Shown one piece after another: positions 4,998 to 46,096 of a DNA stretch of 64,000 nt. The stretch lies in contig CM074520.1 of the NCBI GenBank assembly GCA_037379345.1, positions 16,471,488 through 16,535,487 on the forward strand, given 5' to 3'. Below the pieces are notes generated by a model. That model did no database searches. It had not been told where the DNA came from and saw nothing but the letters and a program-made list of their open reading frames with translations. Position 1 is the first letter of the stretch. Every line of letters begins with the position of its first letter. This stretch comes from Perna viridis (lineage: Eukaryota). The position numbers and the translations under genes were made by a program.

Positions 4998-5081
4998 ATG
5001 AGTGATGAACAAATTGTTGAGCTGTGTAATGTATTCCGATCATTGTCATTCATTTTCACACCGACACGTAAAAAACTGCAA
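4998..5081 (+). CDS. Putative alternative first coding exon MSDEQIVELCNVFRSLSFIFTPTRKKLQ (phase 0)
   Basis: GCCACCATG Kozak context, in-frame upstream stop, donor CAA|GTAAGT, CpG-richer upstream segment. In frame with the 15235 microexon. Confidence 0.6.
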
Positions 5082-8000
5082 GTAAGTCTTTTTGGTAGAA
5101 ATATTTCTTCATATTTGTTATGAAATTGACTTGTGATATCAAATTTATTGCATTAAGTTTTTGTCTTAATATTTTTTAATGCTATTAATATATTTTAATG
5201 TTTAATATTAACCATTCATTTTTCCACATCACATCAAATTAGTTGTAAAAACCATCAAATAACTTTATTTTTACACACCTGAAACAGGTAAAAATTGTCT
5301 TTGATGACAATAATTGTCAGTTATCAATGAGTGAATATTATCTCATTGTGTTGTATTCTGATTTAACTTCTGAATTCCACTGATTAAGATTTTTCACACA
5401 ACAATAGGAACTTTAATTTGACTATTATGACATGTATAATGAGACTTGTCTATGATGTGTTGAAGAGCTATCAAAATTGTATAGTGACAGTTATAGTGAA
5501 TGGAAATCAGTTTTATATGAGATCAGAGTATTCTGTTGGAGGTCACTATATGTATGGCTTAGTGCAATTGTTGAAGGTACTTTGTATTTCTAAGGTAATT
5601 TCTTGACTGTAATATTTTTCTTTTTTTCTGAATAAGCTCAACTTTTGATAAGAGAGAACAGTTCACTAACATTGTAGATTTCTCATATTAATCATGTAAG
5701 TCTGAAGATTCAAGAATATCATGTATCTGATTACTGAAGGAGGAGGATTATATAAATTTGTTTTTTTTTGTTTTTTTTTGTATTTTTTTGTATTTTTTTT
5801 TTCAATCCTAGCTCCTGAAAACGCATATTGAACCATCTTAAGTTAATTTTTTGCTTCTCAGACAATTTTTACTTTTAAATCATTGGTTATGCAGCTATTT
5901 ACAGTCTTCAGTCATGAAATATGATGAGGGAGATGATATTTTGTCTTAAGGTTTTTTATGGCAGGAAAATATTGATAATTTTGGTAAATTTTAGTTAGTT
6001 AGCTTTAATTTGAAAGAGTTGTCATTCAGTAAAATATTTTGAAATTGTATACAGCATTGTTTCTTTACTATATTTGTAACAGTACAATATATACATGACA
6101 AGGCCTGGGACTTAAAGGGAAAATATGCAACAGCTCAGCAGGAAGAACCTAAAACATTTTACAAGTGTTTGATCCTATACCTTTGTTTAAATAGTTTAAC
6201 TCATGATGTCTTTCAATTATTTACCTACTTATATCAACGATTATGATTTTGATCACGTCGTTAAAAAACGAAATCCAGGTTGTTTACCTAAATGACCAAG
6301 GTTAAATGTCACATTGCCACAATCTCTTAGTATCCTAGTTTTGTCATGAAACTGTGTTGACAATTCACTCCATTTTTGACCCACTCTGCTAAAAATTAGC
6401 CCATTAACAGTAACCCTATGTGACATAAAAAAGAAAAACTCAGTATGGATTCCTCGAAGATTAAATATTTTGACAATAAATCCTTTTTTGTCATTAAAGT
6501 ACATCCTATTAGATTGTAGGCTTTGATAGAATTAACACTTTACAGAATGTGTCAATTTCTTACTTATTCTTTCATATATTTGTAACATTGCATAACATGT
6601 ATTTTATAATATTGATAAGTCCCTCTTCTCTGGGATTAATTTTGATACTAGAAGTCCTTCAATAAAGATTTTCGGCTTTGCAACTACGGCAAAAAAAAAT
6701 TAGTATAGTTGCAAGTCATAGAAAAAATCTTGAAATTATTAACTGAAGTATTCGTTGTGTATGTAAAAGTGATAAATTGGTACTATCCAACTTCGCGGGA
6801 GTTGGAAAAAAGTCTTTATATATATACTGTATTTCACCAAATAAAGTGACCTCTCCTGGTTTAAAAATGCTGTAAGAACTGCCAAGCTTCTATAACACTC
6901 AGGAATGTCAAATTTGGTAGGAGGGTAATAAAGTTAGGACTGACAACAAAAATGAAATGAAAAATTGCTTATGAGGTACAAATATGATATGATTACCGGA
7001 TACTTGAAATGTTTGAAAAATTTAGTTTAAAATATTTTCTATCATAGTAACTGAAAGTGGTAGAATATTGTAGTGAAATAAATTTGAAGAAAACAGCCTG
7101 GGTGAGAGGGAAGGCATGAATTTAGGAATGTAGCAATTATTTCTCGAAATGTTACTTTGATAAGAAAAGGATAAGCATTTCAGTGCATTTTTTGGCATGA
7201 AAGTTGCTTAAAGTCAATATTAGGGGAGAAAAACAATCATTTTTGCTTGTTTTTTTTGTTTTTCCATCAAATATCTGAAGCCAAAAGCTTATGTGATGAG
7301 TTGACCTATTGCTAGTATTAAATTTAAATTTCCTTTCTAAAAATTAAAAGTTCATGGAACCCCTTTATGACACTGTCAGTATATAAAATTCTATATAGAA
7401 TGTTTTGCCCTTAATCCATGGCTCTGCTCAAACAAATAAAGGCATTGACGTTAGTTTACATTCTATGTAAGTATTGTACACACTCAGCAAATATTTAGGA
7501 TTCTGTTTAGAAATTTTTTAGGCAGTAACAAGCACCTGTAATTCCATTGTATACACTGTAAGTCATGTTCTGATACATTCCATCACAGGAAAACATATTT
7601 ACTCTTGACGGTGAGTCAATATTAGCTCAGCGAGTTGAATGTGGTGTATGCTCACTTTTGAACAACAGAACTGTTATTGAAATGTGCTGTGCATAGTTTC
7701 TTTTGACTAAAAATGTATTTTAAAATAAAATAAGTACATAAAAAATTCTAGCTTATAATTATGACTTTCTACAAAGGTTTTAAAGTTATTTTCAAAAACA
7801 TATTGCAAAGATTGTTTGAAGGTCACTTGTCATTATTTTCATAATACTACTACATGTGCTTATGTTTACAAATTCATACCCATGCCAAGATTCAGCATAA
7901 TATATTCAATGAAAATCATTCTAAATTTGGAAAAGCTAATATAATACATAATCAAGAAAGATAATCCTCTTAAGTTTTGACATAATAAACCCTACTGACC

Positions 8001-11000
8001 CTCATTTCAACTAAAAACTAAGTACTTCATCTGTTTTGGACTCAAAGTCAGTGCATTCAACTTTAAACATCAAACGCCTTTCCATAAAGTCCATAACACA
8101 TGCCTTAGATCAATCAAATCTGAAACAATGACTTCATTCAGTAAAATTAAGATTTCAAACAAGTTAAATACTTTAAGTTTATTTTGGTAGAAAGTTTACA
8201 TTGATGAATCCAGTTTCACTGAGTTTAAAACATAGATAGCATCTTACATTGTTGAAGTACCTTTGACCTCCTAGTATTGTACTGGTAGTTTTAGTAACAG
8301 GAAAACACCCAGTTTGGTCCTAATGATAATTATCTTACAAAACTCAGAGGTTTCTTACAGATAACTATTTATTATATCAGTCCACTCTGGATAAGACATG
8401 TTTTTTTTTTACACTTTCAGGATGTAGAAGTAACAAAAAAAAGATGTCTAATATTATCTGTTGATTGATGGATTGATTGATTGTGGTTTTATCATCCAAT
8501 GTCATGCATTTTAGGACAAGAAAGTTTCATTAATTAAAATTGAAATGTCAGGATCAGTAGTTTGACTAAAGAAGTATGTGTACCTCTCTTTCTAGTGACT
8601 CTATTTTCACATGTTAAGGTCATCAGATAAAAATCATATATTTATAAAACAAAACTACATGTACCAGTATACAGTGTATACAAGTAAAAGAAACCCAAGA
8701 AGCTATTAAGATAGCATGAGTTCAATGCTTGCTTGGTAGGAGTTATCTTGGATTTATTTGAATTATCTTAAGACATAAGCCTGTCATATTTTGTCTTATC
8801 TAAATACAGAGCTGTTTGGGTATTCTGCAAATCCTTAACAGGTTTGTAGGCTCCAAGACAAGACAGAAAATGACGGAGAAGTGACGTTTCTCGACTTTCT
8901 CTTGCTGGGTGTAATACTTTTCGTGTTTACTTTCCCCATAAGTTTACTTGTATATTAGGTTCTTCCAATAAGTGATTATTTAATGATTTTGGCAAAGACA
9001 TGGATACATTGAAACTGGCGGTGTTTGGACCTCCAGCACAGCATTATCTGCTTCTGACGCTTAAAAGCAATGATTGAACAAGATTAACTTGCATTGTTTT
9101 AGGATTAAGTGGTTTTTACATAGGTATGTTTACAGTAGGATCAAATGTTTGCTCATATTGTGCAAAATTGCTTTGATTTTTTGTTTTCACCACTCATAAC
9201 AATCTGCACATGTGGCTGCACTGACCTTTGTTATTTGCAGGTGGTCTTAAAGTGGTACAATTGTCCTCGATATTGAACTTCATACTTGAATTTTGAATAT
9301 TGTTAATATTATATTAGGGCCTTATTGCTAATAAAGTATTGGTATCAAAATAATTATTTGGTCTGCGTGTCTGTCAGTCTGTTTGTCCAATCTTTGTATT
9401 ATGGGTGAAGTGAGGTTGTCAATTATTTTTTTAATAGAAAGATGACATCATCCTTAAGTTGCTATTCATGAATAATTATTATTCCTTTTTTTAGTTTTTC
9501 ATTATCTATGCTACCATGGTATGAAAAAAATACAAACACATAGTATGTGAAAATAAATTTCTCAGTCAAATGTTGTAATAATTTTAGTGGTTCTCTACAA
9601 CTTCTTTATGCTTTATGTCACATATTTACTGCTAAAGGCAAATTTTAATGTGCATATTAATTTTATGGCTTGTCAGCTTTAATGAGAAATTATGGACTAA
9701 ATTTCAGCATTGTAATTGTGTATTTAATTTCAAGAATTAAGTATTGAATAATATTTGAATATCCAATCAAAAGTTAATCCTGCCAAATATTTAATACTTC
9801 TCCCAATAAATTTGTTGAATAATAAAACAATACATTAAATATTTTGATGAAATTTAGCATAAAATCTGTTCTAAGTAGCAAGACCTTGACCAAACAAATA
9901 TTCCAAGTTTTGTGTGTTTTGACATAAGAGTATTTAATAGTCCTGAATAACTATGTTTTCAGTTGAAATTAAATCCAAAATGTTGGACAAATTCGAGAAA
10001 TAATAAGTTCAAGAAGATAAAGAAAACACTGAAAATTAGATCCCAAAATATACTAGGTGTAATATGAATGATTTTTTTTTCTTTTTTTTTGTTGTGATCT
10101 TTATTTTCTGAAATACTTCCTTTTGTTTTGTTGAGGTTACAAAGATCTAGCCATAATGACATATGCAGTAACCTGGTACCATTGGGAAGTTGATGGCTGT
10201 TTGACCATTATTGTGAAATGAAAAGGGATGTTATCTTTTTGTTGAAATCTGATCATTTTGTTTTTAAAATGGAAGGTCATAACAACAGTAATTATAGGGA
10301 AAAACTCTTTTGTACCAAGACTTGGCTGTCACAAATTACCTTAGATCAGTGGTCTATTTTTTACCTTTTGCCCTTTTTGAAATTTATCTAGACTAGTCCT
10401 ATTATTATGTATACAAAAAAAGCACAATAGTTTGTATTTCAATATTTACAGTTTCATAGTAGCTTATATATCATATCCTTAGAAAGGTTTTAAAAAAGTC
10501 ATGAAGTACTTTTCTGTATACCCCTTTAATGAAAAACCTTCACTTTGAATTGCACATAGAATATGTCCCTTGTTATCAACATTTGTTATAGCATGCAAAA
10601 TGGGCATGTTGTAGATTAAAGATATATTTCACCTTTCATGAGTACTTCCTCAATATTTAAATTCAATGGATATTCATTTGGAATTTTATCAAATATCTGA
10701 CTTGTGAAAATACCAGTAGGTGCAGATCAAAATTGACACATAGTTAGAGTTATCTTTCTTTGTTTACTTAACTTGAACTTGGAGATGTAGGAATTTTTTA
10801 ACAAATATTATTTTGCTTTTCTAATATGCACTTACTGCATTTCAATACAAAACAAATAGGGTATAAGCTATCGATAAAATGTAAAACAATTTTTGAGAGC
10901 TCTCGACCAGGTGGTTAAAATCTATACTGCATAAGGCAGTCTTCTAACTAATCCACATAAATCTTTCAAGGGTCATTGCTATGTGTCAAAACTTTCTGGT

Positions 11001-12267
11001 ATTTAGTCAGACCTTTAGCAAGATACTGTAATTCAATACAGCACAGGGTTTCACTAGACAATGAAAATTAAAAGTTTACAGAAATTAATAGGCTAGAATG
11101 TAAAGGGTGGTAGCCTGAAAGGGTATGTAAGTTTACATGTCTACTCTGGGCAGAGGCCAGGGTGGTGGCCATATCATTTTCATTAGGAATGCAGTGGAGG
11201 ACCACACTTGAGGCGTTTGGAGGTCTTTTATCTTGGTATAAATTCTCCCAATCAAAATAACACTTGCTTTGATGAGTTTCCTTCTTCTTTAGATTTTAAG
11301 TAGCACTCCAGCTAAGAATCATGCAAAATGTGATTCATGGGTAAAAAACCTACTTATTTTTATTTTTTATATTTTGTTTGAATTGCCGTAGTAAACAGAA
11401 ACTAACATTCAGTTTTTCATACAACCCGTGTTCTTTGGAGATAAAGATTGTATAGAATGCACTGTAGATTTAAAAATTAAGGGAGATAACTCTGTAAATG
11501 ACACTCAAATACAATAGAATCTACTGGATTTTCAATGTTGATTATCTCCTAAGAGCAGGCAGATTTGAATGAATAATCACACATTTCATAGTGTAGACCC
11601 ATAAAACAACTTAATTACAAAAATATAAATATGTAGCCTTTTTTGGGGTGTATCACATTTTTTCAGATTTTGCATGATTCTTACAAAGACATTTACTTAA
11701 TTGCTTGAGAAATTGTTATGTGTGGTTAGCATGTTCTTTAAGAGAGTACGTTTTATAACCTTTTAATATAGGTATTGTGTGAGGAAGGATTTCTTTCGAA
11801 AATAAATTATTATTTGCTGTTTATCTGTTTAGTTTGCTTTTTTTGGGAGAAACGTTTTTAGCTTTCCTGTTCAGTCTTTCTGTACAAATTGCTATGATAA
11901 TGTTGAACTGAAGATTTACTCAATATTTCATGAAGGATTTATTTTTACCAATTTTGTGAGCAAGGGAAAACCACAAAACAAATCAACAGGAAGCCATTAA
12001 TTATGGAATTTATGTTATACAGAGAGTAAGAAACATGAAATGAAAAAGCAGTGAAATCAAATAGATATTCTGTCTTAGACAAAACATACCCACAACTCTA
12101 CTGTATATGGACTGGAACCTGTTTCATAAAACATCTCAAATGGAGATTTTCCTCAAATTCTCAACTCAAATTTCGACCAATCCAATTGCTTGAAATTGAA
12201 GATTTGAGGAAAATCTCAATAAATTTTTTTTTTTTTAAACCGGCCCCTGGTTGGTTAATATAATTTG

Positions 12268-12575
12268 GTTATTATACCCATTACATGAAGTAGCCAAGTA
12301 TTATGTGATACTCTCTGAAAAGTTGTGTGCCTGCCTGTCTGTCCATCAATCCGTCCCAGACAATTTCCAAATGATCAACTCAAAACAGATCAATGACTTT
12401 TTTTTTTAAACTTTGGCATTACTTTACACAGTTGTAATTTGTTCTGTAAGATACAGGTTTAGTTTGATTCACAGCAAAATCCATATTGTGGTTTTTCTAG
12501 TTAGCCTAAGACCATTTTGAACATTTTACCATCCCACTTTTTTTAACATTAAGTGGTGGGCTATCACTTAATGTT
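12268..12575 (+). mobile_element. Degenerate HINE/Helentron-like non-autonomous element
   Basis: TTATACCC start, (GTCT/GTCC)-type microsatellite at about 12330-12356, and GGTGGGCTATCACT near the end. Layout resembles the fragments at 29667 and 59916. Confidence 0.35.
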
Positions 12576-12635
12576 TCATGGTCTTAATGAGTGGGTTAAT
12601 TGGAGACATCAATATATAATTTTGTTTGAATATTA

Positions 12636-12910
12636 ATATTAAGATGTGGAGGGATCATGTGGAAGTATTCTCTGTATTAAGATTACTATGATGTGGAGGT
12701 ATCATGTGGAACTGTCCTCTGTATAAAGATTAATAAGATGTGGAGGTATCATATGGAACTGTCCTCTGTATAAAGATTAGCATGATGTGGAGGGATCATG
12801 TGGAACTATCCTCTGTATAAAGATTAACATAATGTGGAGGGATCATGTGGATCTATCCTCTATATAAAGATTAATAAGATGTGGAGGGATCATCAGGAAC
12901 TATCCTCCGT
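12636..12910. repeat. 47-bp minisatellite, about 5.7 copies
   Basis: Unit GATGTGGAGGGATCATGTGGAACTATCCTCTGTATAAAGATTAATAA starts at 12643, 12690, 12737, 12784, 12831 and 12878. Confidence 0.95.
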
Positions 12911-15234
12911 CTGCAAACAATAACAAGAGTCAACAGTCCCTTGTTCAATCTAGTTGTTATGTCAAAATCATTTTCATTGTTAGAGGAAGGCAGCAACCAT
13001 AGAATTTAAAATTGATACAGAAAATTTTTCATAATGATACATTACTCCAAATATTTCTGAATTTGAAGTAGGTTTTTATTTGCATCTTAATTGAAATCAT
13101 GCAGAGCTAACAAGTTCTGGACTCCACCCCTTACATTTAAGTTTTACAGATAGCTAAAAAGATAGGATTATTAGTATTTGTGTCAGTTTCAAGTACTCAG
13201 TTTGTTAAAGTCACATTTTTATATTTTTGCTGTATCATTGCTCATGTGAATGTTTCTTGGAGGATCAAAGAATACTCACAGTTAGAAGATTTATCTCAAA
13301 TGATGTTAAGTTTATTTTCCATTGACCTTTGAAATGGTTTTAAGCCTCTAATTGTATCTACTGTCATAGTATTATGGAATGGATTGGGAGGCAAAAGAAG
13401 CTTCTTCATACAGAGTGTGACATGAGACAGAACTAGTACAGTGATTCTCAAGTTAAATATTAGTACATTTTGTATACATAGTCATTGCCAAAAAGACAAG
13501 GAGTTGGAAAATACACAAAAGCTCGGAAAATGAAATAAACGGAAGAGAAATGCAAATAAACTTTTATTTGGAATATGAATTAATTTGACATTGCTTCTTA
13601 TCAGTCGTATATCCAGCATTTGATGGTATGGGTGTAGATAGAATTAAATGCAAAGTGAAGCAAACTTATGAGTAGGGAATACAGATTTGATTCATCATTT
13701 AAATCTTCTCTTGTCCCATTATTGGTTCCTGTATGATATTTAAAGAATATTCGTTGTCTCAGCAAGACTCAGAAAGGGAGAATAAATAGGGTTTTTCCCC
13801 TGTTTAGCTTTCTTACAATATTAATTTACAGGTACCTATCTATTCCAGACTGTCTTCAATTTGTCACATGCACAAGTTTATTCCCCCTTAATATTCCAAT
13901 AATGCTGATTGAGCACAAATCATGCAATTCATTAATTCCAGTAAACTGACTAGACTTTGAAAAAGAGATAACACTAGAATTCCAATACAACAGTTCAAGA
14001 AGGTTATTTGGAAATTTAATGAATTATGTCACCAACATGATAGGAAGATCTACCTGAAAAGGTTATTTTAAGTGGACTACGGTTTTCATTCCATTAGTCC
14101 TGATAGGATCAGAAAAAACAAAATACTTCTACTGTTCTAAAGTTAGCGGTAGTAGACAGTATTTTAATATGCAATCCATGCACATAATTTAATTAGTGTT
14201 TCAAGGTAGATAAGTCTATAGCTTGGAGTTCATTGTGAAGTGGGTTTTTTAGGCAGAAAATCAGATTATTTAGTGTTTTATATGAATGAATTAGTACACT
14301 TGATGGCTTCTGAAGTATTTTAGGCAACATGAATGGATGGTTTTTTTTAATGTTATGAAATATTTTATCAACAAAATTTCATGTACTGGGGAAAGTTTAA
14401 ACATTATTCATTGACTAAGAAAGGAAGTAGATTTTTTAGTAGAGACCTTTATGAATATCTTTCAAAAAAATTTTTTTGAGGGTATTTAGTAAAAGCCTGT
14501 GAGATTTTATATGTTTGATGAAGATTTTTGAAGAAATTATGGACTTAAAATGTATACATTATGTTAGACTAATACAAAGTTATGAAATCAATAAAATGTA
14601 TAATGCATGTAGATCTAAGCTAATTTTGCTTAAGTGGAGTTTTCCTGCTTGAATGCAGGATTGTTCAAAGGAAGATGGGTGGAAATAGATTTCATTGATG
14701 TCTAAATTACATAGCTGTACCTCAAATTGAAAGAGTGTGTGAAATGAAGATTTATCTAGGTGTTTAGTGACTTTCATGTTGTTTGGAATCAAATGAAAGT
14801 TATTTCAAAGTCCTTGTTTGCACATGCTTTAAATTTAAACAGACCTATCTTAATTGAATTCTAACACAAACATTACATAACTGTTATTGCAAATAAAAAC
14901 GGCTTTAAATTCCTTCAGAGCTGTTTCTCGATTGCCTGGTATAGTTTATAGTGGCATAAAATTCAGGTTGATTTTTTTGTATATGAATTTAATGGATATA
15001 TACATGATCTACTTTCTCACACATTAGTCAGCATGCATATGCATTTTCTTTCATGTATCTCCTCATCTTGTTTTATATATCATTATATGAATTAGAACTG
15101 TTATATATTTTAATTGAAAAATTTACCATTAGATCTCAATTTCTATTTAGTGATGTACAATAGTAAATCTGTTCGAATGTTTTTTTTTTTATTTTAATTT
15201 GATGAAAATACTAATACATTTTTACTTATTTTAG

Positions 15235-15259
15235 AGGCTGATTCCTGCCAGAGAAGTTG
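15235..15259 (+). CDS. 25-nt microexon (RLIPAREV), phase 0 to phase 1 bridge into the SAM exon
   Basis: Acceptor ctaatacatttttacttattttag with branch-like CTAAT; donor TTG|GTAAGT; open frame. The phases connect exon 1-885 (or 4998-5081) to 46025. Confidence 0.7.
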
Positions 15260-19464: not shown

Positions 19465-19558
19465 ATGGCACGTTATGAACTGATACGAAGTTTCAGTGAA
19501 AAAATTAGAGGGATCAGATATTTTGGATTAGAAGATGCAAGAGAAAGGAAAAGAGCAG
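19465..19558 (+). CDS. Putative alternative first coding exon MARYELIRSFSEKIRGIRYFGLEDARERKRA (phase 1)
   Basis: attATGG start context, 31 open codons, donor CAG|GTACAT in phase 1 (joins 46025), CpG-richer segment upstream at about 18840-19160. Confidence 0.55.
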
Positions 19559-28962: not shown

Positions 28963-29140
28963 CAGGCCTGTAGCCAGGGATTTGGGGTGATGTGACACTC
29001 TCCTAAGCCTCTCTTTGAAGCCAAAAAAAAAATATGTTTAATAATGAGCTAAAGTTTATTTGAGGCCATCAAAGGGGGAAAGTGTTGTCTTGTAACTTTT
29101 TCTTAACTTCCCACCTAAAAAATATCTAGCTACAGGCCTG
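28963..29140. mobile_element. MITE with CAGGCCTGTAGC terminal inverted repeats
   Basis: CAGGCCTGTAGC at 28963-28974 and GCTACAGGCCTG at 29129-29140 (12-bp perfect match); no clear target-site duplication. Confidence 0.7.
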
Positions 29141-29666: not shown

Positions 29667-29935
29667 ATATTATGCGCCTGCTCTGAAGGAGAGAGGGGTA
29701 TATTGTTTTACTCTTGTCCATGTTTTAAAAACTTTAATTGTCACACCTTTTTCAGTGACTACTGGTACTTATCACAGCACCTTGAAATGTTCATGCATTC
29801 TTCCTGTAAGTGTGCCATATGGTGGGATTCACCTTTGGAAGAAAACTTTGTGTTCACTAATACGGTTGATTTTCCTTATATTGTGATTGAAAGTGGCGTA
29901 TCACTAGTAACCCATCTCTCACAGATTTCTTGTTA
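29667..29935 (+). mobile_element. Degenerate HINE-like element
   Basis: TTATGCGCC..GAAG..GAGGGGTATATTGTTTTA..TGTCC start shared with 59916; end GTGGCGTATCACTAGT..CTCACAG..CTTGTT. Confidence 0.4.
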
Positions 29936-32900: not shown

Positions 32901-35900
32901 AAGAGGCTTTAAGACTGTCATGAAAAATTGAAAATATATGAATAGATTGTATGAAGAGACTTCTTGCACATTTTGAGGATGCTGCACTAAATTTAACCAA
33001 TTTCGAAGTTCTTTTTGTGGGTTTTAAATCAATGTTCGGTGTTTATTTTTATTTTCTGTTTTTCATCTTTTTTTTTCTAGAAAATATTTAAAAGTGTGTA
33101 TTGTCCTGTATTTTGAAGTTGTATTATTTGTGTTTTTAGTATCATTGAATTAAGTTTCCTTACTAATGCATACATGATTTGTGTAGTCATTTGTTTAAGT
33201 TGGTTTCTGAGTGAATAAATAATTCTTGAATATGTGGTATTAGTTGTACATATTACACAAGTTTTGATTTTGTGTTTTGGGAAGAAATTATAGTTAACTG
33301 AACTCTAATGAAATCAGAAAAAAAATGTAAAATATCTTGTGGAGAAAATTGAATATTTGCATAAAACTAAATGAAGGGTGTAACGGGATAGCAAGGTGAC
33401 TGGCCTTGAAATAAATTTTCTTCCTGTCAATTTTAACATAACACCAAATAATTGCATTAATCATTTTATGGCTCATTGGCATTAGTTCCAATTTGTACAA
33501 AATTCTCAAATAACTTGACAGATGTGAGGGCCAGTGGTCATAATCTACCAAACTTCCTTGTGACTGGGATTATACAATATTACCCATGATCCTTTGCACT
33601 TATTCCATCATTGTTGTAAGAAGGCTGTTTGATTGATTTCTTGTTAAATCAGGGATTAACTGCTGACCTTTTAGAAAAGTTTTCATGCAGAAATTTTCAT
33701 CTCAAAATTAGATTTTCATTTCAGTTCAAATGTTGTTTACAACAATTTCATATTAATTTAACTCTCAATTTTATGGAATGATTTAGCATATTTTTTTCAT
33801 AATTCATTTCTTCAAAATTGGAAAAACAGCTTTTGTATGCAATATTTAATTTGTTTTTTTAAAGTAAACAGTTACACAAAATGCCAAGGTTTGAACTGAG
33901 TTTAACCTTCTTCAGCACTTGTTGCCCTGACAAAAGTTTTTGGTCTTTGAGACAGAGGTCTTTTGTTGCAGAAACAAAGATATTCAGTGTCATCCTAGGT
34001 AGAATGTTACAAGTCAGATCTCAGAGTAAAATTTGATCTGTGTAGTTGCTTTATTGCCATTAAAAAGCTTTAAAGCTAAATGGGTCCATTAGTACAATCT
34101 ATAGAACTCTTGTTAAAGATGTAATCAAAAGTTTGATTTTCATTTTTTTAAAGTTTTAAACCATATGTGGTCATTAGAATAGTCTATGGACCATTTGTTG
34201 AAGATGTAACCCAAGTTACTGCTAAGTCATGGTATGATCACCATTCTTTTCATGGTGGGAAAACTCTTAATACTGACAAGATAGTCCACTGTTACACAGC
34301 ACCAGAGATACAAAGATGTCTTATATACTGTGATGCACTTGAAAGGTTCATTGAGAACTTACAAGACTTTAGTGTCATCAAATTACAGTAATGCCATTCA
34401 ATCTGTCTGTAGAAATCAATTGATATCCAGATGCAGTGCATTTAATTACTGTATCATGGTAGTTTAACCAGTCATTAGAGCATACTACTGTCATATAATT
34501 GTATAATTGCTGAACATGCAGTTATCTTGTCAGCTGTAAACACTCCAGTGTTAGTTTCAATTGTAGTTTATGCACACAGTTTGAGAAAAAAAAATCATGA
34601 TATAGCAATTCATAGTCACACACATAGTTCCTTAAATTGGAACTAGAATCAGCTTTCTTCATTTTTCTGTTAAAAGCTACTCGATGGGACACCTTAAGCT
34701 GCTCAGTCATTTGTATTCCAACATTAAGTAGTACTGTGTAATGACAAAAGTATGATTCAGAAGTATGTACAAAATCTTGGATAATAATACAATACTGATT
34801 GGGTGGAATTGTCTACTTTACACCATAACATTTATGAAGTGAAGGATAGTTGATCCCCGTCCTTCTTTGGAAGTTGCCCCTGAGTCAGAATATGCCATTT
34901 TCTGTTCTTTATTCTTCAAAAATTGGGGCTGGCTTTATTCAAGTAAGATATTAATTATTTTCCCATTTTCCTATGACAACCATGGGTCAACTTGACCGCA
35001 GCTTATCTTTATAATAAATGATAAATTAAATTATATTTCTAAACAAAACCGACATTCAATAATAAAATTGACCGTTTCTTTTATCAGATTAGATCCTAAC
35101 TTAAAGATAACAAGAATGACAACCAAAATTTTAACCTTGTGAACTTAATTATCAATGCCTAGTGGTATTGTTATGATTTTAATGTCTGGGAGCCACCAAA
35201 ATTATTTATAATTGATTATGATTATGAATATAAAATGATGTAGGATAAGTAGTCCCTCTGGGTGGTTTCTGTGACCTTTTTGATTGGTCACAGTTGGTCA
35301 TTTAGCCTAATTGTCCTGGATCACCTGTACATACAGGTAAAAGATGCATGTTTACCTGCAGTAAATTATCAACTGGTCAGGTATTTGCCAGACTTACATG
35401 GGTTATTGCATATCTGATCAATTTAGTGGGATTTATGTGAGTTTTGTTCATCAGGAATTTGGTCAGGAAGAATAGAGAATTAATTGACTATCAAAAATGT
35501 GTGCTTCATTTAATCTTGGCAGCTGATGAAGTAAATGGGCCTTGTGGTCATATAACAGAATGAGTAGCCCACCCTTCTGTTGTAATTCTAATACTTGATC
35601 AGTTTGATGGGAATTTATAATGTGTAAAAGTTTTTGACAGTTGGTGAATTTCTGAATTTTTGGAGAAAGTGTTGAAGTTTGAACTTTTTAAAAATAGGAA
35701 AGTTTTGACTTTTTAAGAAAGTTAAAATTATACATGTATTGGTTTTATTACATTTTCAAGGAAGTCGTGTACTTGTTATTGAAACTGTCATCAGTAACTT
35801 GTGATGTTCATATGATTTGCTATTTATAAAAAAAAGTGTGGAAGTTGCTTATAAGCTATTTTTAAGTGGACATGTTAAACCAGGAAATTTTCAACGAATA

Positions 35901-36115
35901 CAGTGTTAAAATTAAATAAAATTTCAGGGTTTTTTCGGTCTCCCACTATTGAGTGATAATTAGTCAATTCTACAAAGACTGCTAAATGACAAAATTTAGA
36001 ACTTTCAGAAAAGCTTAGGAAATTTGTCTAGAATGTATGCCTTCATCATGACCAGCATATTGGGACATTTATAAGTCACTATATTTCTAAGATTTCTAAG
36101 TGTAATTGAGAAACA

Positions 36116-36254
36116 ATGTTGAGCTTTGTGTCAGCAATTGTACAGAAACAAATACTAAAGTGGGAGTGGAGTTGTTGTGGTGGCCAGGAAGGAAGGAAGC
36201 GGGACAGTTGTGTACATTTATGTGCCTTCTATGAGGATGCTTATATCAAAAAGG
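36116..36254 (+). CDS. Putative alternative first coding exon MLSFVSAIVQKQILKWEWSCCGGQEGRKRDSCVHLCAFYEDAYIKK (phase 1)
   Basis: acaATG start, 46 open codons, purine-rich coding-like composition, donor AGG|GTAAGT in phase 1. Confidence 0.6.
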
Positions 36255-38531
36255 GTAAGTAGGAGCCTGGTTTTAAAGGCTTTAATATTTAGTGTGTGAC
36301 TTCCATTGGTAGAAATTATCAAAATTCTTGCAAATTTTAGATTTAATTAAGGCCTTTATGTACCATAAACTTGTTTTTGTTTGGTGCTCAGGAGTTAGTG
36401 TGAAAAAAATAATGCCCTGTCATTTACTAATAAGCACTTGCAGAACTTGGGGTCATTTACTATTGTATAATTAAAGTGTTAAATTTCAAGTCTTGAATTT
36501 CTCCCAAGGTCAAAGACAAGCTTTTATAGCATCAGTGACAAAAATATCTGTATTTGGAGAAGTGAAAATTATTAAGTACTTAACAACATTGCTATTCACA
36601 CTAACAATCTACAAATAAGTGAAAAGGGCTTGACAGATTTCATTGAAACTTTACACATTTGTAATAGTTTACATCTCTATAATCCCATTGTCAAGTACAG
36701 AGTCACTGTCCAGCTGTGTTATTTATAGAGTTGTTTTTCACACCTTGTTCCCCTAATGATTTATACCTGTATTTACCTCATTATACCTGGCCAGGTAATT
36801 AATTATATATCAAAAGGATGAGCCACATGTTGGTGTCTCATTAAGGCTATCAATGAACTGCTGTTGTAGTTCCATGATCTTTGTTTTTCAACAACAACCA
36901 GCTTCAATAATTGATATCTGGGGATATATAGTTATCAGTGGTACCAATAATCAGATAGCTATTTGCTTAATTCATGATGGAAGATGGCTCTGTCTACAAT
37001 CAATAATAATGGAACAACCTCACAGAATGGGAAGAGAGTTGAAAATGATCTCACTCTTTAGATTTATGAATACATAAAAAGTTGCATGCACCTCTGATAC
37101 TAAGTGTCATATATATTAAATGCAGAGAGGTTTGATATAGCAAGTCTTGGTTTCCCTTGGGTGACATGTACGCATGTATACTGAAACTTTGGGGACAAAA
37201 AAAACTGGTATCAGACTGGTTCTTAATTTGATCCAAAAAAAAAAATGACAGACCATTTATCATGTTTTTAGAACCACATAAATCATGCTAACACAGCTTT
37301 AAGAAATAACCATGATTTATGTATAAACAACTTTCAGGACATTTGGGGGAATCCCTTGGCACTACATGTACTGGTACATGTAGAAATAACCATAAATTAT
37401 ATAGATGTACATGGCACATTGACCAGAAGCAACACAAACTTACCACTAGCTGTCCATCTAATGTGACATCTTGGGGGATTAAGGTAGGGTTAGGGATTAA
37501 ACAGAAGGGTACCTGGATAATATGTATCAGAAAAGGGTGAATTATTCACAACTTTATTTCCATACCTAGAGATGGTTTTGTTATATACTATGTGTGTTCA
37601 GTATTTTTCCAAGTAAACCTTCATGGTCCTTAAGATATTCCTCCATTATTAAGTATGCAGCCTTAGAGGTTAAGTTTTTATTATTAATTTTTCTCACCAA
37701 ATTCAGAGATGAAATGTTTGTGTATCTAGCCCTTTTTCTTGCTTTAATTGTCCAATTAAATATGTCTAGGAAACTAATATTCTGGTCATGGATCTCTTAT
37801 TTGAATATCAATTTTATTTATTACTATAGATTACCATGTCTTAAAAAGTTTAGATCTTATTTGAAGTTCTAAATCCTATCTTTTTATTGACCAAACATTT
37901 AATGTTTGTCTTTGATACAACTTCCTCCACCAAGGCTAGTCGCATGTTACATTTTAAGAGCCATGTTTCTTGACCAAATCTGTCACATCCTGTACATGGT
38001 CAAATTAGCATACCTGCAAGATCAAATGGAAAACCTCAAAGGTGTTAAATGAAACTTTATGGTCAGTCAGTAGTCATAATGTCACATTTGAAGGCTTGTT
38101 AACTCATTCATGATGTTGCATATGGTCAGATTGTAATGAGGCTTGACCTTTGATCTTTATGGGTTTCTGTGAAGGTCATAGACAAAAGTCATTTACTTAG
38201 ATATGAGCTTCAAGTATTGCTTTCTTCTGATTTCCTTGAATTTAATATCGAAATCCACTTTAGGATTCTATAAATTAGCACAATTTTCTGTTAATTGTAT
38301 TTAAGGGAGATAACTCTTATCACAAAGTTCAAGAAAAGGTGAACTTGTAACATCACCTGTCTTGCAGATGTTGTTTAGATAAATGCAACTACTTTCTTAT
38401 ACTTTCCAGTGTAAAAAATGAATGCATTTCCCTTTCCTTGTTATATTCTGTATGATAAAATACCTTAAATTCTCTCCTTTCAACAATTGTTTATGATCAA
38501 TATTTTAAATAATAAAAGAAAATTTTGATTT

Positions 38532-38544
38532 ATGCTAAGTGAAG
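38532..38544 (+). CDS. Possible minimal first coding exon MLSE (phase 1)
   Basis: ATG CTA AGT GAA G|GTGAGT: consensus donor in the correct phase, but short enough to arise by chance. Confidence 0.3.
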
Positions 38545-41500
38545 GTGAGTAGCAGTAAGGGCAAATTATTTATGTCTCATGTTGTAACTTTGGTGTTCAT
38601 TTCAACACTTAACCCTTAATGTCACCTAGGTTTTATTTCTTTACATTTGTTCATGATATTTTATATTTGACAGGGTCTTTTTTTTAAGTAGATAAAAAAT
38701 TGCTTCCATTGATGGCCCCAAAGTACCATTTATTTTTGGTATTGACAAATATAACATATTCATCTTAAACCATTTTCTAAAGCCTTTCTGTCATCAAGAT
38801 ACCATCGAGTTGTTAAATTATGATGGATAAACAGGGACTTATCAGAACAAAAATCTCCAGTATTTGTGTGGACTCTTTGAATTGCAATAAATTACACACA
38901 TCAGATTTAACAGTGAAATTGCCCATTATGGCCTTTTCAGTACTGTCACAATGATAGAAATAGGCCAAAAATATTATTTGTTGGTGTTCAAATGTAGATC
39001 ACTGGGAAATAACACCTCCTTGAAATATCTTGACATTTTTATGTGCTGGTCAGCTTTAGTGTAAAACACTTATTAAGTAAATATTTCATGACAGGTTTTG
39101 ATTGATGAATGTTTTCCTGTCCTTGTCTTAGCCCATTATCCCTTAAAAGTGGACAGTATCAGTTTTCATTTACTTTTTATCTCAAATTTTCACTTTCAAT
39201 AAACATTGAAGTAGAAATAGACCATAAATAGCCAAAATAGTTTAGATTGTGAAGTATCCTATTTTTGGGAACTGTACCAATAAAGGATTGGTCCATGGTC
39301 TCTTGAATGAACATTGTCCATTATTCAATTTATGGTCCATTTTCGGTGTCCATTCCATCGTTGGAATAATCTATTGTAGTAAGAAGGTCGTGATGGCCTA
39401 CAGTGGAAGGTTTACTGAGAAAACTTTTTAGAAAAGGAATTTTATTTCATAGGGATTTGTTTAAGAATCATAAGAGGTAATTTTAATTATTTTTATCTTA
39501 AATTATTGTCATTAGTTTTGATTAGTTTTCATTTTAGCAAATATATCTGTATGTTCAAAATTTTTTAATTCAAACTCACCTGAGATGTGAATTGGTCAGG
39601 GGTGCCCTCATATTGTAATCTGTGTTGAACAATAAGGCCAGACAATTGCATTTCTATCACTCTCATGCAATGCAACCAGGCTTCCATTGGGAAATCTGCT
39701 ATTAAACTATTTAGCATCTAGAAAAATACTATGGTTGTAAATACGCTTTTATCATTTAATTATCATTACATTTGGTCTTAATATATTCAAATATACATTC
39801 ACTTAAGGAGCTGATATCATTTTATGTTGGTTAAAATCCAGCTTGTGAATTTGTTGATGTTTCAGGGTTCTTGCTTTTTTGCAAATAAAAAAGAAAAGCA
39901 GAGAATGTTCATAATGTTTTGTATTTTTTATCTAGTCCATGTTTCCCAAGGGAGATAACTGTGATACACATTACTGCTATTCTTTCTTATTTAATCAGTC
40001 ATTTTTTAAGCCTTTGATGGTTGCCAAAAAAATAGAATTTTCATTTATATATTATCAAAGACATACTACATGATTATGCAAGATTAATTTATTGACATCT
40101 TTAACTTATGAAGTGAATTATTGCCTTAATGTTTGTCATTTTTAAATATCTTGGTAATTCATTAGGTCGTAAAAACTGGGTTGAGTTGTTCTGACACATA
40201 TGAGGTCAATGAAATCATATTTAAGATAATATAAACTGCTTAGAAACATAAAAATTATTTTGATAGTCAAATAAATAAGTCCAATACCCTATCACGGGTC
40301 TTTAAAGCTTAAAATAGTCTACTTGAGCAAACCGGACTAAAATTCACTTTTAATTCACAGTGGTCAAACATATGGCCTTACAGTACTGTAAATAATAAGA
40401 TTTGTTTGGACACTTCATGTGGTTATATTTGACACCCTCACACAAGGATATTTTACCATTTCATATAGAATCGAACTTATGCCCAGTTTCCTTTATTAAT
40501 AATTGGTGACGTAAAATCAACAAGGCATTGGTCATCGTAAGCTTGTGTAAATTGCTTTATCAAATAATGCTCACTTGTTAAACATTAGCCATTCAGTTAG
40601 GATTGTAAGATTATTGCTGACCAATATTCAACATTCAGGACTTCCTTTGTTATTAGAAAGTGGCATAGTTATTAAGAAATTTGAAAAAATCTTCTGCATA
40701 CATTTGCAAAAAAAAAAAGCAGTATTTTTAAGCAAGAGGAATGCTTTGACCTTTCAAATACTGGACCTTTTCTTAAAATGGAAGCAGATCAGATTTAAGT
40801 TTTTTTACAATTGCTCAAGTGGTGAAGTATAGTGAAACTACAGCAATCAAGGGAAATAACTCTGTACATAAGCAAAACTACACATTTAATGAACAGTTTA
40901 TTGAACATTGCATGTAGTTGTACTTCACACATTTAATACAACTATCTATCAACAAGCCAACAATTATATTTATCAAGTTAGGCAGATTACATGTAAATAT
41001 GATAATACAAAACTCCTACCAATCAATATTGATCAACCTACAATGACTCTAACATTCCTATCCGGAATACTACTGGTACCTAGATACTGTGTCAGGTGTA
41101 CTCTCCACGGCACACGTAGCTATGTTGTTCTTGCAAATAAATAACAATGGACTAATATTGATGGAGAGCTTTTGTATTTGACAATGTTAATCTCATTTAT
41201 ATCAAGATTTATTAACTTTTAAGTCCTTTTTAGATTTTTAAATTGGTGAAATAGAGTTAAATATGAAGTGAGTGTTTCCTAGGATGTAGATCTATTGATA
41301 GTACATATAATAGCGATATGGGGGGAAAAACCTGAGTATTAGTAGAATAAACCTCTCAATCAGGCACGCCTAGAATTAAATAATCATTGACTTGAAAATT
41401 GAAAAGTTGTATGATGAATACCATAAACTGTAAAATATGAACCATGCAGTATCTTGGCATATATTATGTGTTGTCTTTTATCAATCTTATTTCTTGTTAT

Positions 41501-43121
41501 CTTGCCCATAACTACCCAAGTAAGAAGTAAGATATCTGTACAAAAAAAAATATTAGGAACATTAACTCTCTCCTCAGACTTGAGAGCGAAAAACATTCCT
41601 TGGGGAAGGAACTTTTTACACACACTATCACCCTCCCCTTTTTCTCTCATCAGAAAACACTGTTTATATATCTTTACATTGATAAATATGTTCTCTTTCT
41701 GTGACTTGCACTTTACAAGTTACACATATATTATTCAAAATTATTTATGAAAATGATTATAATAATGACAATCTCTTATGAGGTAAATCATTTAAATTCA
41801 TAATTCTTGGTAAAAGTGCTTCTGTGTTCATATTTCTCTGGGTCACCTCTCGTGAGAATGCAGGCCTATTTTGGGAGGAGTTTGGCAAATATACTTTTAC
41901 TTATGAAAATGTACAAACAATGTTCTTGTCAATAAAGCAATCTGTTCAAACGTCTGGGAAACTGTTATTTCATTTGATTAAACTATTTGAAAATATGCTT
42001 TGCTGTCAAACAATTGTGTAAAAAAATAGTTCCTAGTTTATGAGTATTTGTATACAGTGATTTGAGTGGTATGTTTTATTTCGGGCTTATAATCAGAGAG
42101 AAGTTTGTTTTCAAATTTCCATCAGGTTTTGAGTTTCAACATGAGTCCAGTTTTCCTAAAGTAAACATAAGATACTGAACAGAGATGTTTGCTCACAAAC
42201 AAAGAGCTTGGTAACATTTATTTATACCACTCTAACCTCAAACCCAGGTAAATGATTGACCAATCGTTAGATAACCGCCATAATCAGTTGACATATATTG
42301 CATTAGGCCTTTACGACACTGGCTTGAATTTACAAGCCTAGAAATTTAGAAGGATAATTTTAGAGAAAATTTTTTCATAATTCGACTCTGGCTTAGATCT
42401 ACAAGCCTAAGGATTGAAGTAGGACTTTTTTTAGGAATTGCTTGAATCATCCAATTTTGCAAATCAGGATTTGAACTGATGCCTTTACAGATGAGTTTGT
42501 GTCATTTTCTGATTCATGCAGAGTTTTTGATGACACAAGTGGATATCGTGTTATGAAAATTTACAGATTCATTTTCTGGTGATTATATTTCAAATTACTA
42601 TTATAGCCATAAAGGATAAATTCATCCTGTGATGAGTTTACTTGTATTACTCAACTTTATGTAGCTGTCATATTTTGACAAAGGAATACCAATTTCCTGA
42701 TTGAAGGTTCAGAACAACGGGGATAATAATTTTGTAATCTGTCAATTGTTCACAGTATCAGATAGTTCCATCTGGGAAAAGTGAGCCATAAATGGAGAAC
42801 TAATTTCCGTAGAACTGGAACCAACTGTCAACTTTCCTAATTCAAATATTACTGAAACCATATGTAAATGAGATATATGATATGGCTGTGTTTGTTACAG
42901 ATGTATTTCTAAGGTTTCACAACAGCAGTGATTAAACACCTCTCCAGACAGGTGAAAAAGTCAACTAACATATTTAGCTAAGTTTATCACATGGTCAATT
43001 GCAGTGAATTTTTATCCTGAAAAAGTTCAGTGTCATTCACAACGATTTCCATGCTTTAAACAAGAACATGGTAACTGGTGGCAAAAAATCTGTTGTCTTT
43101 GTCAGTTACAGATAGAGTGAC

Positions 43122-43278
43122 ATGTCTAGTTTGACAGCTTTAAAACTTCTGTCCAAGTGTCTTTTTGATCATGATTTAAAACATTCTAATGACTTTAAAC
43201 GAAGGATGTCCTTGCCAGATTTGTGCAGCATCAGGTCATCTATGTGTTTTAATGGATGTAAAAAATACAAAGAAAAAG
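43122..43278 (+). CDS. Putative alternative first coding exon MSSLTALKLL...KRRMSLPDL...KKYKEK (phase 1)
   Basis: gacATG start, 52 open codons, donor AAG|GTAAAG in phase 1; contains an RRxSLP motif. Confidence 0.6.
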
Positions 43279-44284
43279 GTAAAGATAATTTTTTTTTCTC
43301 ACTAAATATGTTTTTATGAAAATATATGAAATACAAAAATATATTTAGTGGTCTTTCTTTTATCGTTGGCTTAAATTTAGGTTCAGTAGCATCTTTAAAT
43401 TTGTACATTCTCAATTTCTTGAACCATTTAAGAATTTATTGTTTGGAACAAAATTGCTATGAAAGGGAAACTTGATAATTTCTGATGTACCAAGAATAGA
43501 TTCGTTGTTTAGGGTGCACAACGTTACATAAAGACAAAATGTGGCAATTTAATTTTTAAGGGTCCACCCTTGTGTGCTTTGAAATTAAGCAACAAGATTA
43601 TGATATAACAGTATTACCCATCTTTGAACCAAAAAATTACATTCTGATACTTTAAGCCAGTTACTACATGGGAAATTTGTTTAACCCCACTGTGGAAAAA
43701 ATAAAACTAGACTAGGTCAGAATTGAGAGCTTAACCTGTTCTATTGAAATATTTTTACAAGCTGGTTAGATTTATTGTGGATTTTTTCTCTCAGGAAAAT
43801 TGATAGTTAAAGACTCAAAAACCTATCATAATAATCCTTTTCATGAGCAACTATGTCCCAAGAAGATATTTCGTACCATTATCTTTTAATAAAATTTCAC
43901 AAAAGATTTGGACCGAGTTCTTTCATTCCAGTATTTCTAATATGAATGTGAGTTATAACAAGTCCAACATCTTGCATTGTATCGCAACTGTATCAACTGT
44001 AACTTTGGTTTCATATCTGAACAGATTGCATTTAAATTTGGTATGATATCCTGTCATAATCTAACATATAAATGTACTTATAAGCAGCATGAATGTACAA
44101 ATGTTATCTAATGTCTGATAAAATGTTGAACAGAAATATTCCATACATAGGCGCGTAGAGATAGTGAAGTAATGCCTAGGTTTTAATCCATCGGCAATAG
44201 AAAGTGATCGTATCTTAAACTATTATGTATGTTCCAATAATGCCTTTATGTGAAATATTTGGTCGTTATTCATAGGACTTCCAC

Positions 44285-44318
44285 ATGTGCTTTTATAGTA
44301 TGTGTTCTCAGCCTAAAG
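44285..44318 (+). CDS. Possible alternative first coding exon MCFYSMCSQPK (phase 1)
   Basis: Two in-frame ATGs (44285, 44300), donor AAG|GTATGT in phase 1. Confidence 0.35.
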
Positions 44319-46024
44319 GTATGTGACTTGTACTGTGAGAGAAGAGAAATGAATGGTCCTTACTTGCAGTGCTTTAATGCAAAACCTACTAATCCTTTAA
44401 TCATGACTTTCAAATTGAATTTTAATCCCCTATTTCTTTGCCTTCCAAAAAGTTCTCTGGGCTAAATTGGACTAAGCATATAGACTATGGTTGCTAAATG
44501 CACTTTGATAAAACATTTTCAATGGTTAAGATTTCCAATACAGCTGAAACAAACTGGTATGACAAGCAAATATTAATCTGTATGTATGATTTTCTTTTTT
44601 TTTTCTTTTCTGAGGTATTTCATCTTTGGTCCATTTTCTTATCATTTTAGGGCTATTTATAAAAGCTGGTTTCCCTCTTGAATTGTAGATTTCGGTCATG
44701 ACACTGTGTTTACTTTTGCTGAGCCTTTCCTGTATGACCAACACTTGAAATGTGATGGCCTTTACAAATGGACAAAAGAAGCCTGACTTATTTTGGGCGT
44801 ATTAATTTATTTGAGCAAACTTTTTTGAAGTATTTGTTTTATGAATGTCCAGTTTTTGTGTAAACAAGTTCTATAAATATATCGTTACAAGAAGGTGTTT
44901 TTCAAACAGTCCAGTTATTGAAGAAACAAACTGTTATCTTGAAAAAGTTATATTTTCATAGAATCCATGTTGAGATTATTAAAAATAGAATTTAATTCAC
45001 TGTCTTCAGTCACGTAACAGAGAATGAATAACATTACATGTACTTAATTTGAATATTTTGTTTATTTTGATAAAGCTTATATTGATATAATATATAGCAC
45101 TATCTGTGCATCAGGTGCATGTCATAAAGTGCATGTATGCACATATTAAATGACAAAGTGCACTTCATAAATATTTCAAAATTACATGGTTGTAGAATGT
45201 ATTAAACCTGTATGAAATAGAGGACATGGTATTATGACAAAGTAAGGGATTTTTAATCCATATATATTTTATTTACTTCACGAACATCAAACAGATGACC
45301 AATTACCCAATACACTTGCATGGACAATTTCATCACTGTTTTCAAAGTAATAATGCACACTCATGCATTATATTTCAAATTAAAAATGCAAACATGAAAG
45401 ATATGCATGCATATTTTATCATAAGAGGAAGAATAAACCTGACAAGGTGTTAAATATCTACCTTTAACTACCTGTTTGATAGATCAAAGGGATCATTCTC
45501 CTCTGGTGTAACAAGGTGTTAATGAATAATATAAATATGCATCATTTGGGGCGTTACATAATGAAGGTATTCTTCAAAGGGAGGTAGTCAGGTTATGGCC
45601 TGTTATAGGTAACAGTGTGACCCCATGTCTTCATAAAACTGAGTAATAATCTCACAGGGTTTTATAAGTCTATTGTGTAGTCACTTTGTGATGAAATTAT
45701 TTCATTATGTAATTTCCCCCAATAAACAGATGTTAATAAATCAGATTTGTAGGGTGTATATCCTCAAATCTGTTCTGTTCTGTTCACTTTGTGTTGTTAA
45801 ATTGCTGGGAAGTAAAAGGTTTGAAAATCACATTGCACTGTAGGTATTTATGGTACCTTATTTTTTTTCCAACAATTTTATGAGAGAGTCCAAATTTTTT
45901 TTTTTTTTTTAGATAGAAAATCTTGCAAAATTTTGAGAAATACTTTTCAGTTAAGATTATAATCCTTGGGTAGAATGTTTGGTACCAGTACTTAGTTTTA
46001 CAAAAGTTATTTCTGTCTTTTCAG

Positions 46025-46096
46025 AAGTGGAAGCAGTTGAAGCAACAAGATGGTTAAAGGAAGCTGGATTTCCCCAGTACGCTCAGATGTATGAAG
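46025..46096 (+). CDS. STARD13: DLC/STARD13-family RhoGAP, SAM exon 1 (EVEAVEATRWLKEAGFPQYAQMYE)
   Basis: Acceptor ttctgtcttttcag, donor AAG|GTAAGA, phase 1-1. Matches the DLC1/STARD13 SAM motif EAKEACDWLRAxGFPQYAQLYE. The symbol denotes the family; an invertebrate gene would be co-orthologous to DLC1/STARD13/STARD8. Confidence 0.95.

Follow-up and report, generated by a model that had tools for sequence, protein, structure and literature searches.

Conserved alternative first exons upstream of the SAM exon in a DLC/STARD13-type RhoGAP gene of the mussel Perna viridis

How many N-termini does a single invertebrate RhoGAP gene encode, and are the short open reading frames (ORFs) in its long introns real first exons or accidents of sequence? 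The question is raised by a 64,000-nucleotide (nt) stretch of the Perna viridis genome (GenBank assembly GCA_037379345.1, contig CM074520.1, positions 16,471,488 to 16,535,487; hereafter the window), whose plus strand holds the 5' two-thirds of a DLC/STARD13-type RhoGAP gene. A preliminary description proposed that the region upstream of the first SAM-domain exon is a large array of interchangeable first exons, comprising at least seven ATG-initiated ORFs that end at GT donors in phase 1 and two further exons that end in phase 0. We consider it very likely that the gene gives rise to six, and possibly seven, RhoGAP isoforms through alternative promoters, and that these differ only in the peptide preceding the SAM domain. 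Conservation between genera supports several ATG first exons joining position 46025 in phase 1, as had been proposed, and RNA overhangs are observed for three routes into that position. The exons concerned are as follows.

1-885, plus strand: long N-terminal coding exon, 3' part (cut by the window edge); open frame, phase-0 end, donor GTTAGT
4998-5081, plus strand: alternative first exon A; ATG start, 28 codons, phase-0 end with donor GTAAGT, predicted junction with the 25-nt exon
15235-15259, plus strand: 25-nt exon, phase 0 to phase 1; AG acceptor, GTAAGT donor, encodes RLIPAREV plus G
19465-19558, plus strand: alternative first exon B; ATG start, 31 codons and a final G, phase-1 end, RSFSEK...RERKRA
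21990-22041, plus strand: possible first exon, doubtful; ATG start, 17 codons and a final G, phase-1 end, present once in the genome
27675-27720, plus strand: alternative first exon C; ATG start, 15 codons and a final G, phase-1 end, peptide acidic and helix-like
36116-36254, plus strand: alternative first exon D; ATG start, 46 codons and a final G, phase-1 end, Cys-rich peptide containing a conserved CCG
43122-43278, plus strand: alternative first exon E; ATG start, 52 codons and a final G, phase-1 end, R-[RK]-M-S-L-P
46025-46096, plus strand: common constant exon, the first SAM-domain exon; 88-96% amino acid identity to bivalve DLC proteins

The coordinates of all nine features first described are correct: each of the seven ORFs begins with ATG, is open, has a length of 3n+1 and a final G, and is followed by GT, and exons 1-885 and 4998-5081 end in phase 0, which the 25-nt exon converts to phase 1. 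We propose that each promoter would start a transcript at its own first exon, with its own ATG and 5' splice site, and that the first exons would be mutually exclusive because they have donors but no used acceptor. The exons at 19465, 27675, 36116 and 43122 (and perhaps 21990) would splice directly to 46025 in phase 1, their final G contributing to a Glu codon, and exon 1-885 and exon A, both in phase 0, would reach 46025 through the phase shift to 1 in the 25-nt exon. The acceptor at 46025 is common to all routes, and the AA found there completes the split GAA (Glu) codon; the five short first exons each have their own ATG and donor, and all six N-termini are in a phase compatible with 46025.

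The window was compared with the orthologous interval of M. edulis (locus L001), M. californianus and M. coruscus. The M. edulis interval from the end of the long exon (34497) to the start of the SAM exon (77992-77993) spans 43.5 kb, against 45 kb in the window, and of the 31 blocks that blastn finds between the two, 29 are collinear and on the same strand. The exons at 4998, 19465, 27675, 36116 and 43122 have identical lengths in both genera (84, 94, 46, 139 and 157 nt), and all five keep the ATG, GT donor, phase and last base, with no stops, in the window and in the three Mytilus species. Pooled differences at codon positions 1, 2 and 3 number 31, 23 and 64 (chi-square p=6e-6), tblastx finds a single open frame in each of the five blocks, and ungapped identity in the 60 nt outside the exons is 0.27-0.48, which is background. 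Since they combine equal length, intact ORFs, third-position bias and background flanks, the five short first exons are, judged by this comparison, coding and under purifying selection.

Exon A retains its 84 nt, ATG and GTAAGT in the window and the three Mytilus species (blastn block 5025-5094). Exon B is 94 nt long in all four species, 82% identical at the nucleotide level; 8 of its codon changes are synonymous and 6 non-synonymous, and identity in its flanks is no higher than background (blastn block 19465-19561, 82%). Exon C is 46 nt in all four, with 14 of 15 residues identical and six synonymous changes to one non-synonymous. The 139 nt, ATG and G/GTAAGT of exon D are likewise present in all four species; its conserved block has its 5' edge 3 nt before the ATG and its 3' edge at the donor (blastn 36113-36260, 72%), with 12, 9 and 22 differences at codon positions 1, 2 and 3. 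Exon E is intact in all four species over 157 nt without indels, at 85% nt identity. The long exon and the 25-nt exon are conserved as well: exon 1-885 has 62% amino acid identity to residues 292-548 of Mytilus P0135, and the 25-nt exon is kept in Mytilus (M. edulis L001:51371-51395, KLKPAKEV; blastn block 15219-15274), where every annotated long form has its peptide after the long exon and before the SAM exon. Exon A together with the 25-nt exon aligns to the N-terminus of Saccostrea oyster isoform X2 (P0003; score 66, shuffle p<0.001).

A quite different explanation is that all of the mini-ORFs are chance products of a long AT-rich intron and that the gene consists of the long form via the 25-nt exon only. 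The ORF counts are those that such an explanation predicts: between 15260 and 46024 on the plus strand, phases 0, 1 and 2 contain 111, 105 and 92 ATG-ORFs ending at G/GT, and the minus strand has comparable numbers, so that the phase enrichment suggested as a check in the preliminary description is absent. Phase-enrichment tests with any GT, GTR, GTRAG or GTAAG donors or with a donor weight matrix gave no usable signal, and there is no phase-1 excess among the 53 donors with a matrix score of at least 7. There being no phase excess, the seven candidates are therefore drawn from about 105 equivalent ORFs, and the caution already attached to them, that they were chosen by phase and that the shortest might be chance, was justified in that about 100 equivalent ORFs exist. 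The ORFs at 38532 and 44285 lack an ortholog, and the long form dominates the reads, as chance would also have it. Against this, five ORFs have the same length, start codon, donor and phase in both genera, and their substitutions are biased to third positions. RNA overhangs link 46025 to 19558 and, from a mixed consensus, to 27720, which refutes a chance origin for 19465 and 27675, and homologous peptides head DLC models in other phyla. We consider chance a most improbable account of the array as a whole. The methodological caution is a general one: in a long AT-rich intron, splice phase gives no statistical power for picking out ATG-ORFs, each phase offering some 100 equivalent ones, and it was the sister-genus comparison that cleanly split real exons from chance.

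Transcript evidence comes from reads aligned to 40150-46149 in three raw RNA sequencing (RNA-seq) runs (X21, X22 and X24) and one contig run (X10), with about 20% of each raw run read and 8-14 junction reads per run; short exon ends were concatenated in scripts to be matched against the overhangs and against N-termini, and each exon was searched by itself. All four runs cover the SAM exon, with overhangs on both sides, that past 46096 being the next exon. In X21, X22 and X10 the 5' overhang consists of AAAGAG (the last 6 nt of exon 1-885) followed by the 25-nt exon and then 46025, and in X10 the route from the long exon through the 25-nt exon to the SAM exon is held in a 6.9-kb contig. The junctions 885 to 15235 and 15259 to 46025 are used, and the long form is dominant. 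X22 has a second overhang in which four reads carry 12 nt unique to 19544-19555, then CAG, then the SAM exon, and these reads are the 19558 to 46025 junction. In X24 the consensus agreement of the overhang is 0.6, all 30 of 30 positions fit either the 25-nt route or the end of exon C (27675), and 10 positions match the end of exon C only; we read this run as a roughly even mixture of the 25-nt route and a 27720 to 46025 junction.

The remaining donors that had been put forward for such a check (22041, 36254, 38544, 43278 and 44318) gave no junction reads in these runs, and no overhang at 46025 matched 4998, 36116, 43122, 21990, 38532 or 44285. In X21, X22 and X24 the interval 43122-43278 has zero depth and no joint to 46025, and 44285-44318 is also uncovered; exon D (36116) was checked by overhangs at the shared acceptor only, and exon A (4998-5081) has no junction reads in the runs examined. 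We also note that two donors look weak, that of exon B (G/GTACAT; Mytilus GTATTT) and that of exon E (G/GTAAAG; Mytilus GTAATT); the donor of exon B is used in RNA-seq reads, and donor score is therefore a poor filter at this locus. A database match to the exon E peptide proved to be the 75-residue product of an unspliced genomic ENA contig, which does not bear on splicing, and was set aside.

Several considerations weigh against a multi-promoter array. The four exon B reads share an adapter-adjacent start and may be few molecules, and the 27720 to 46025 junction derives from a mixed consensus and not from single reads. No reads were found for 4998, 36116 or 43122, which is weak evidence given three samples, about 20% of each read and 8-14 junction reads per run. 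The Mytilus species are close together, and the comparison effectively involves two lineages, that of the window genus and that of Mytilus. Selection by phase has no discriminating power on its own, as the ORF counts are without enrichment, and RefSeq isoforms of Mytilus were judged from 15 of 38 cluster members, such that short forms may already be annotated.

The first exons are accompanied by conserved upstream blocks, which are putative promoters by their position and similarity to Mytilus:

4614-4901, plus strand: putative promoter/5' untranslated region (UTR) block of exon A; 70% identity over 289 nt, collinear with M. edulis L001:40366-40614
18768-19169, plus strand: putative promoter of exon B; 69% identity over 408 nt, collinear with M. 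edulis
27296-27674, plus strand: putative promoter/5' UTR of exon C; in block 27296-27767, 68% identity over 517 nt
35007-35532, plus strand: putative promoter of exon D; 72% identity over 537 nt, stops in all frames
42906-43121, plus strand: putative promoter/5' UTR of exon E; in block 42906-43301, 73% identity

The block at 18768-19169 has stops in all frames and lies 300-700 nt upstream of exon B, and that at 35007-35532 lies 0.6-1.1 kb upstream of exon D. More generally, collinear conserved non-coding blocks are dense in the 31-kb intron, at 68-81% identity to Mytilus; some lie just upstream of conserved first exons and others, such as 43768-44241, have no recognisable exon. The blocks are:

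18768-19169, 20176-20365, 21645-21941, 23299-23474, 33547-33763 and 35007-35532: conserved non-coding blocks with identity to Mytilus
37978-38121, 39007-39243, 42028-42262, 43768-44241 and 45511-45580: conserved non-coding blocks with identity to Mytilus

A further element at 22585-22840 is 81% identical over 258 nt to M. edulis L001:57469-57723, with a core that is higher still; its identity exceeds that of most of the coding first exons, it has stops in all frames and no Rfam match, and candidate roles for it are those of an enhancer, of a first exon without coding sequence or of an unknown RNA. The open block 22630-22708 within this longer non-coding element was considered as a first exon and rejected, as it ends in T and would form TAA with the SAM exon.

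This landscape gives weight to the view that the conserved first-exon blocks are themselves regulatory and non-coding, acting as enhancers or as promoters for first exons without coding sequence, and that they are open by accident and encode no peptides, since the same intron contains many non-coding blocks of equal or higher identity, the 81% of 22585-22840 among them, and 36116 and 43122 are without RNA support. However, the true non-coding blocks have stops in all frames and similarity that does not end at an ATG or GT, and the one open case would run into TAA. The five exons, in contrast, are bounded 3' by a GT donor (19465 and 36116 also 5' by the ATG), contain no indels over 46-157 nt and have substitutions that favour third positions. 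We judge a purely regulatory origin unlikely, if somewhat less so than chance.

A third possibility is that the intron harbours small genes or micropeptide transcripts of its own, to which the mini-ORFs belong. In favour of this, every mini-ORF starts with an ATG of its own and follows a conserved block, and no reads join 36116 or 43122 to the SAM exon. Against it, the frames run without a stop up to the conserved donors, the four direct-splicing exons share the single phase and last base that continue the SAM frame, RNA overhangs place two of them next to 46025, homologs stand at the N-terminus of full-length DLC models, and neither an Rfam family nor any other gene is found at the mini-ORFs. 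Nested genes are in our view as improbable as a chance origin. Downstream of the 25-nt exon, each of the four independently conserved ORFs of at least 15 codons is in phase 1, and two systematic screens (aligned ATG/GT pairs, and peptide comparison in all phases) revealed no independent conserved exon in a wrong phase and no additional conserved first exons.

The reading of these exons as alternative N-termini raises the question of how far they extend beyond mussels, and here the N-termini of 62 DLC-family models were compared with the mussel exons. Exon B aligns to the first exons of chiton P0140, of Glossina P0093 (the ortholog of Drosophila cv-c) and of vertebrate STARD13 P0208 and P0236, the vertebrate matches including guinea pig X2, eel and others. 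The common pattern is R-S-[FI]-S-x-[KQ]-h-R, followed by R-E-R-[KR]-h-A just before the junction, and single-pair p values are 0.002-0.008. Because the matches recur in independent phyla at the same position, homology of exon B to the chiton, Glossina and vertebrate first exons is probable. The N-terminal 14 residues of exon E resemble the N-terminus of Pinctada P0134 (p~0.006), and 10 kb upstream at the Pinctada locus (L002) gave no significant match to the mussel first exons except this weak one between exon E and the annotated Pinctada first exon. Exons C (27675) and D (36116) have no convincing match outside mytilids among the models compared, and the members of the oyster Logan cluster yielded no additional N-termini.

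The peptides differ in character, and it is plausible that they confer isoform-specific regulation or localisation. The motifs that suggest this are a basic RxxS in exon B, a 14-3-3-like R-x-x-S-x-P in exon E, whose R-[RK]-M-S-L-P we take to fit the 14-3-3 mode-1 pattern, a predicted acidic amphipathic helix in exon C, and in exon D a conserved CC with a further Cys that would be a possible lipidation site. Isoform-specific regulation or localisation has also been suggested for the isoforms of human DLC1 (PMC5118400).

The vertebrate DLC genes offer the closest known system. Alternative promoters and first exons are an established feature of DLC1, and they are stated to occur in DLC2 and DLC3 as well. 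In human DLC1, alternative promoters give five isoforms (PMC5118400); mouse Dlc1 produces four transcripts from three promoters, one first exon lying 133 kb upstream and replacing 47 amino acids by 13 (PMC2839985). Like vertebrate DLC1 (ARHGAP7), the mussel gene would have several promoters, first exons that swap the peptide before the SAM domain, and a long isoform with a large upstream exon, all meeting at the same splice junction (E/Q-I-E-A). It is unlike vertebrate DLC1 in being one gene with four or five short first exons within 31 kb, and in having a 25-nt phase-converting exon for its two phase-0 routes; use has been seen for three routes. Vertebrate STARD13 models have at least four distinct N-termini at the same junction, and the mussel count of six or seven is about the number found in vertebrate DLC genes.

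The STARD13 (DLC2) isoform M..RRSISEQLR...RERRLA aligns to mussel exon B, RSFSEK..R...RERKRA, and both end before E-[IV]-E-A, although exon B is about 10 residues shorter and the likeness is that of a short motif (p~0.002 per pair). Orthology of mussel exon B to this STARD13 first exon is probable, not proven. Among bivalves, the Mytilus and oyster models named 'rho GTPase-activating protein 7-like' belong to the orthologous gene and have the same order of long exon, 25-nt exon and SAM exon, and oyster isoform X2 starts with an exon of the 4998 type; unlike the array in the window, the models examined are long forms plus one ab initio short form beginning MMDKPSLK.

Plectin has about a dozen alternative first exons with demonstrated targeting roles. 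The mussel gene resembles it in bringing many, predictably mutually exclusive, first exons onto one common exon with peptides of differing character; unlike plectin, it has six or seven N-termini known from sequence, and the likeness is one of analogy only. The suggestion that the mussel locus is a much larger array, as in plectin, does not hold, its six or seven N-termini being close to the five isoforms of human DLC1 and to the vertebrate STARD13 models.

The points that may be new here are modest: an array in a mollusc whose five short first exons are clearly under selection, conservation of a 25-nt phase adaptor between mussels and oysters, and one first exon that is probably orthologous across Bilateria. 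A bolder proposal, which we put forward tentatively and regard as possible without calling it probable, is that the first-exon array is older than the protostome/deuterostome split, with exon B the ortholog of the STARD13 RRS[IF]SEQLR...RERRLA and dipteran cv-c RSFSQK...RERKIA exons. If so, a single invertebrate gene would keep an ancestral set of N-terminal modules that was later divided among three vertebrate paralogs, and the conserved RxxS would mark an ancient isoform-specific phospho-switch. The isoform array itself, if its promoters are as proposed, makes control of the N-terminus by alternative promoters an old, selected feature of DLC RhoGAPs and not a peculiarity of vertebrates or of tumour biology. 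The invertebrate locus is compact: within about 40 kb it has five short first exons, all of them accompanied by a conserved block that is a putative promoter, and it is suited to tests of peptide function.

Among the seven phase-1 exons originally proposed, four are solid (19465, 27675, 36116 and 43122), one is doubtful and two are rejected. For 21990-22041, the three Mytilus species have a collinear 18-codon phase-1 ATG-ORF ending CAG/GTAAAT, and the candidate lies 50 nt downstream of the conserved block 21645-21941. Its peptide has low similarity to those of Mytilus (score below 30), agreement among such closely related Mytilus species carries little weight, and none of the RNA-seq overhangs at 46025 matched it; on balance the chances that it is a real first exon seem about even. 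The ORFs at 38532-38544 and 44285-44318 have no alignable counterpart or equivalent ORF in Mytilus, and we take them as chance ORFs, so that conservation of the frame, which had been suggested as a check, was found for five exons in three Mytilus species and not for these two. The M. edulis model CAG2245328 (P0254) begins with an 8-codon exon, MMDKPSLK (L001:47508-47531), that leads into the 25-nt exon; this exon can be aligned within Mytilus, nothing in the window corresponds to it, and it may be lineage-specific or a model artefact. We also note that 24000-25600 has a GC content of 0.37 against about 0.31 and long open frames on both strands, without a Mytilus counterpart.

By alignment, the locus encodes a RhoGAP of the DLC/STARD13 type (SAM-RhoGAP-START), and that identification, made originally from the letters of the sequence, is borne out by a Pfam RhoGAP match and by exon-by-exon identity to Mytilus. 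The window is AT-rich (about 31% GC) and contains no N. Exon 46025-46096, read in phase 1, is the start of the DLC SAM domain, EVEAVEATRWLKEAGFPQYAQMYE, and the further constant exons are these:

48471-48554, 53321-53380 and 56577-57764, plus strand: downstream constant exons; tblastn with Mytilus P0135, 78-100% identity per exon
60365-60589, 61030-61461 and 62696-62821, plus strand: downstream constant exons; tblastn with Mytilus P0135, 78-100% identity per exon

The bounds of these downstream exons (48471-62821) are approximate, being drawn from protein alignments, with introns between them. Per-exon tblastn identity of the window to bivalve DLC proteins is highest for Mytilus (62-100%) and about 46-88% for oysters. 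The SAM start E-[IV]-E-A-x-E-A-x-x-W-L is present, and exons 46025-46096, 48471-48554 and 53321-53380 align to the SAM region at 93-100% for Mytilus and 80-88% for oyster, an assignment that comes from protein alignment of split exons and not from a Pfam SAM profile. The RhoGAP profile PF00620 scores 32.8 bits on exon 62675-62851 (cut-off 24.5 bits) and 21.6 bits on exon 61015-61500, where the match spans the first 42 positions of the profile. The other RhoGAP exons and those of START follow within 3 kb of the window end; START-region exons are at G000:C10:16536841-16538514, with 69-87% identity to residues 876-1070 of Mytilus P0254, the START profile PF01852 being found on the orthologs and the mussel exons assigned by alignment to P0254. 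A representative search for protein models from P. viridis itself gave an unspliced 249-residue fragment only (100% identity), an Rfam scan of the window gave no match, and no second DLC gene was found in the genome (723 Mb assembly, 46 contigs). There are, in addition, two extra copies of the single exon 60365-60589 at G000:C10:16197939-16198184 and 16264772-16265014. Located 207-273 kb upstream of the window, both have an open frame of 88 codons and 85-86% amino acid identity to residues 462-542 of Mytilus P0254, and these look like an isolated exon duplication or capture.

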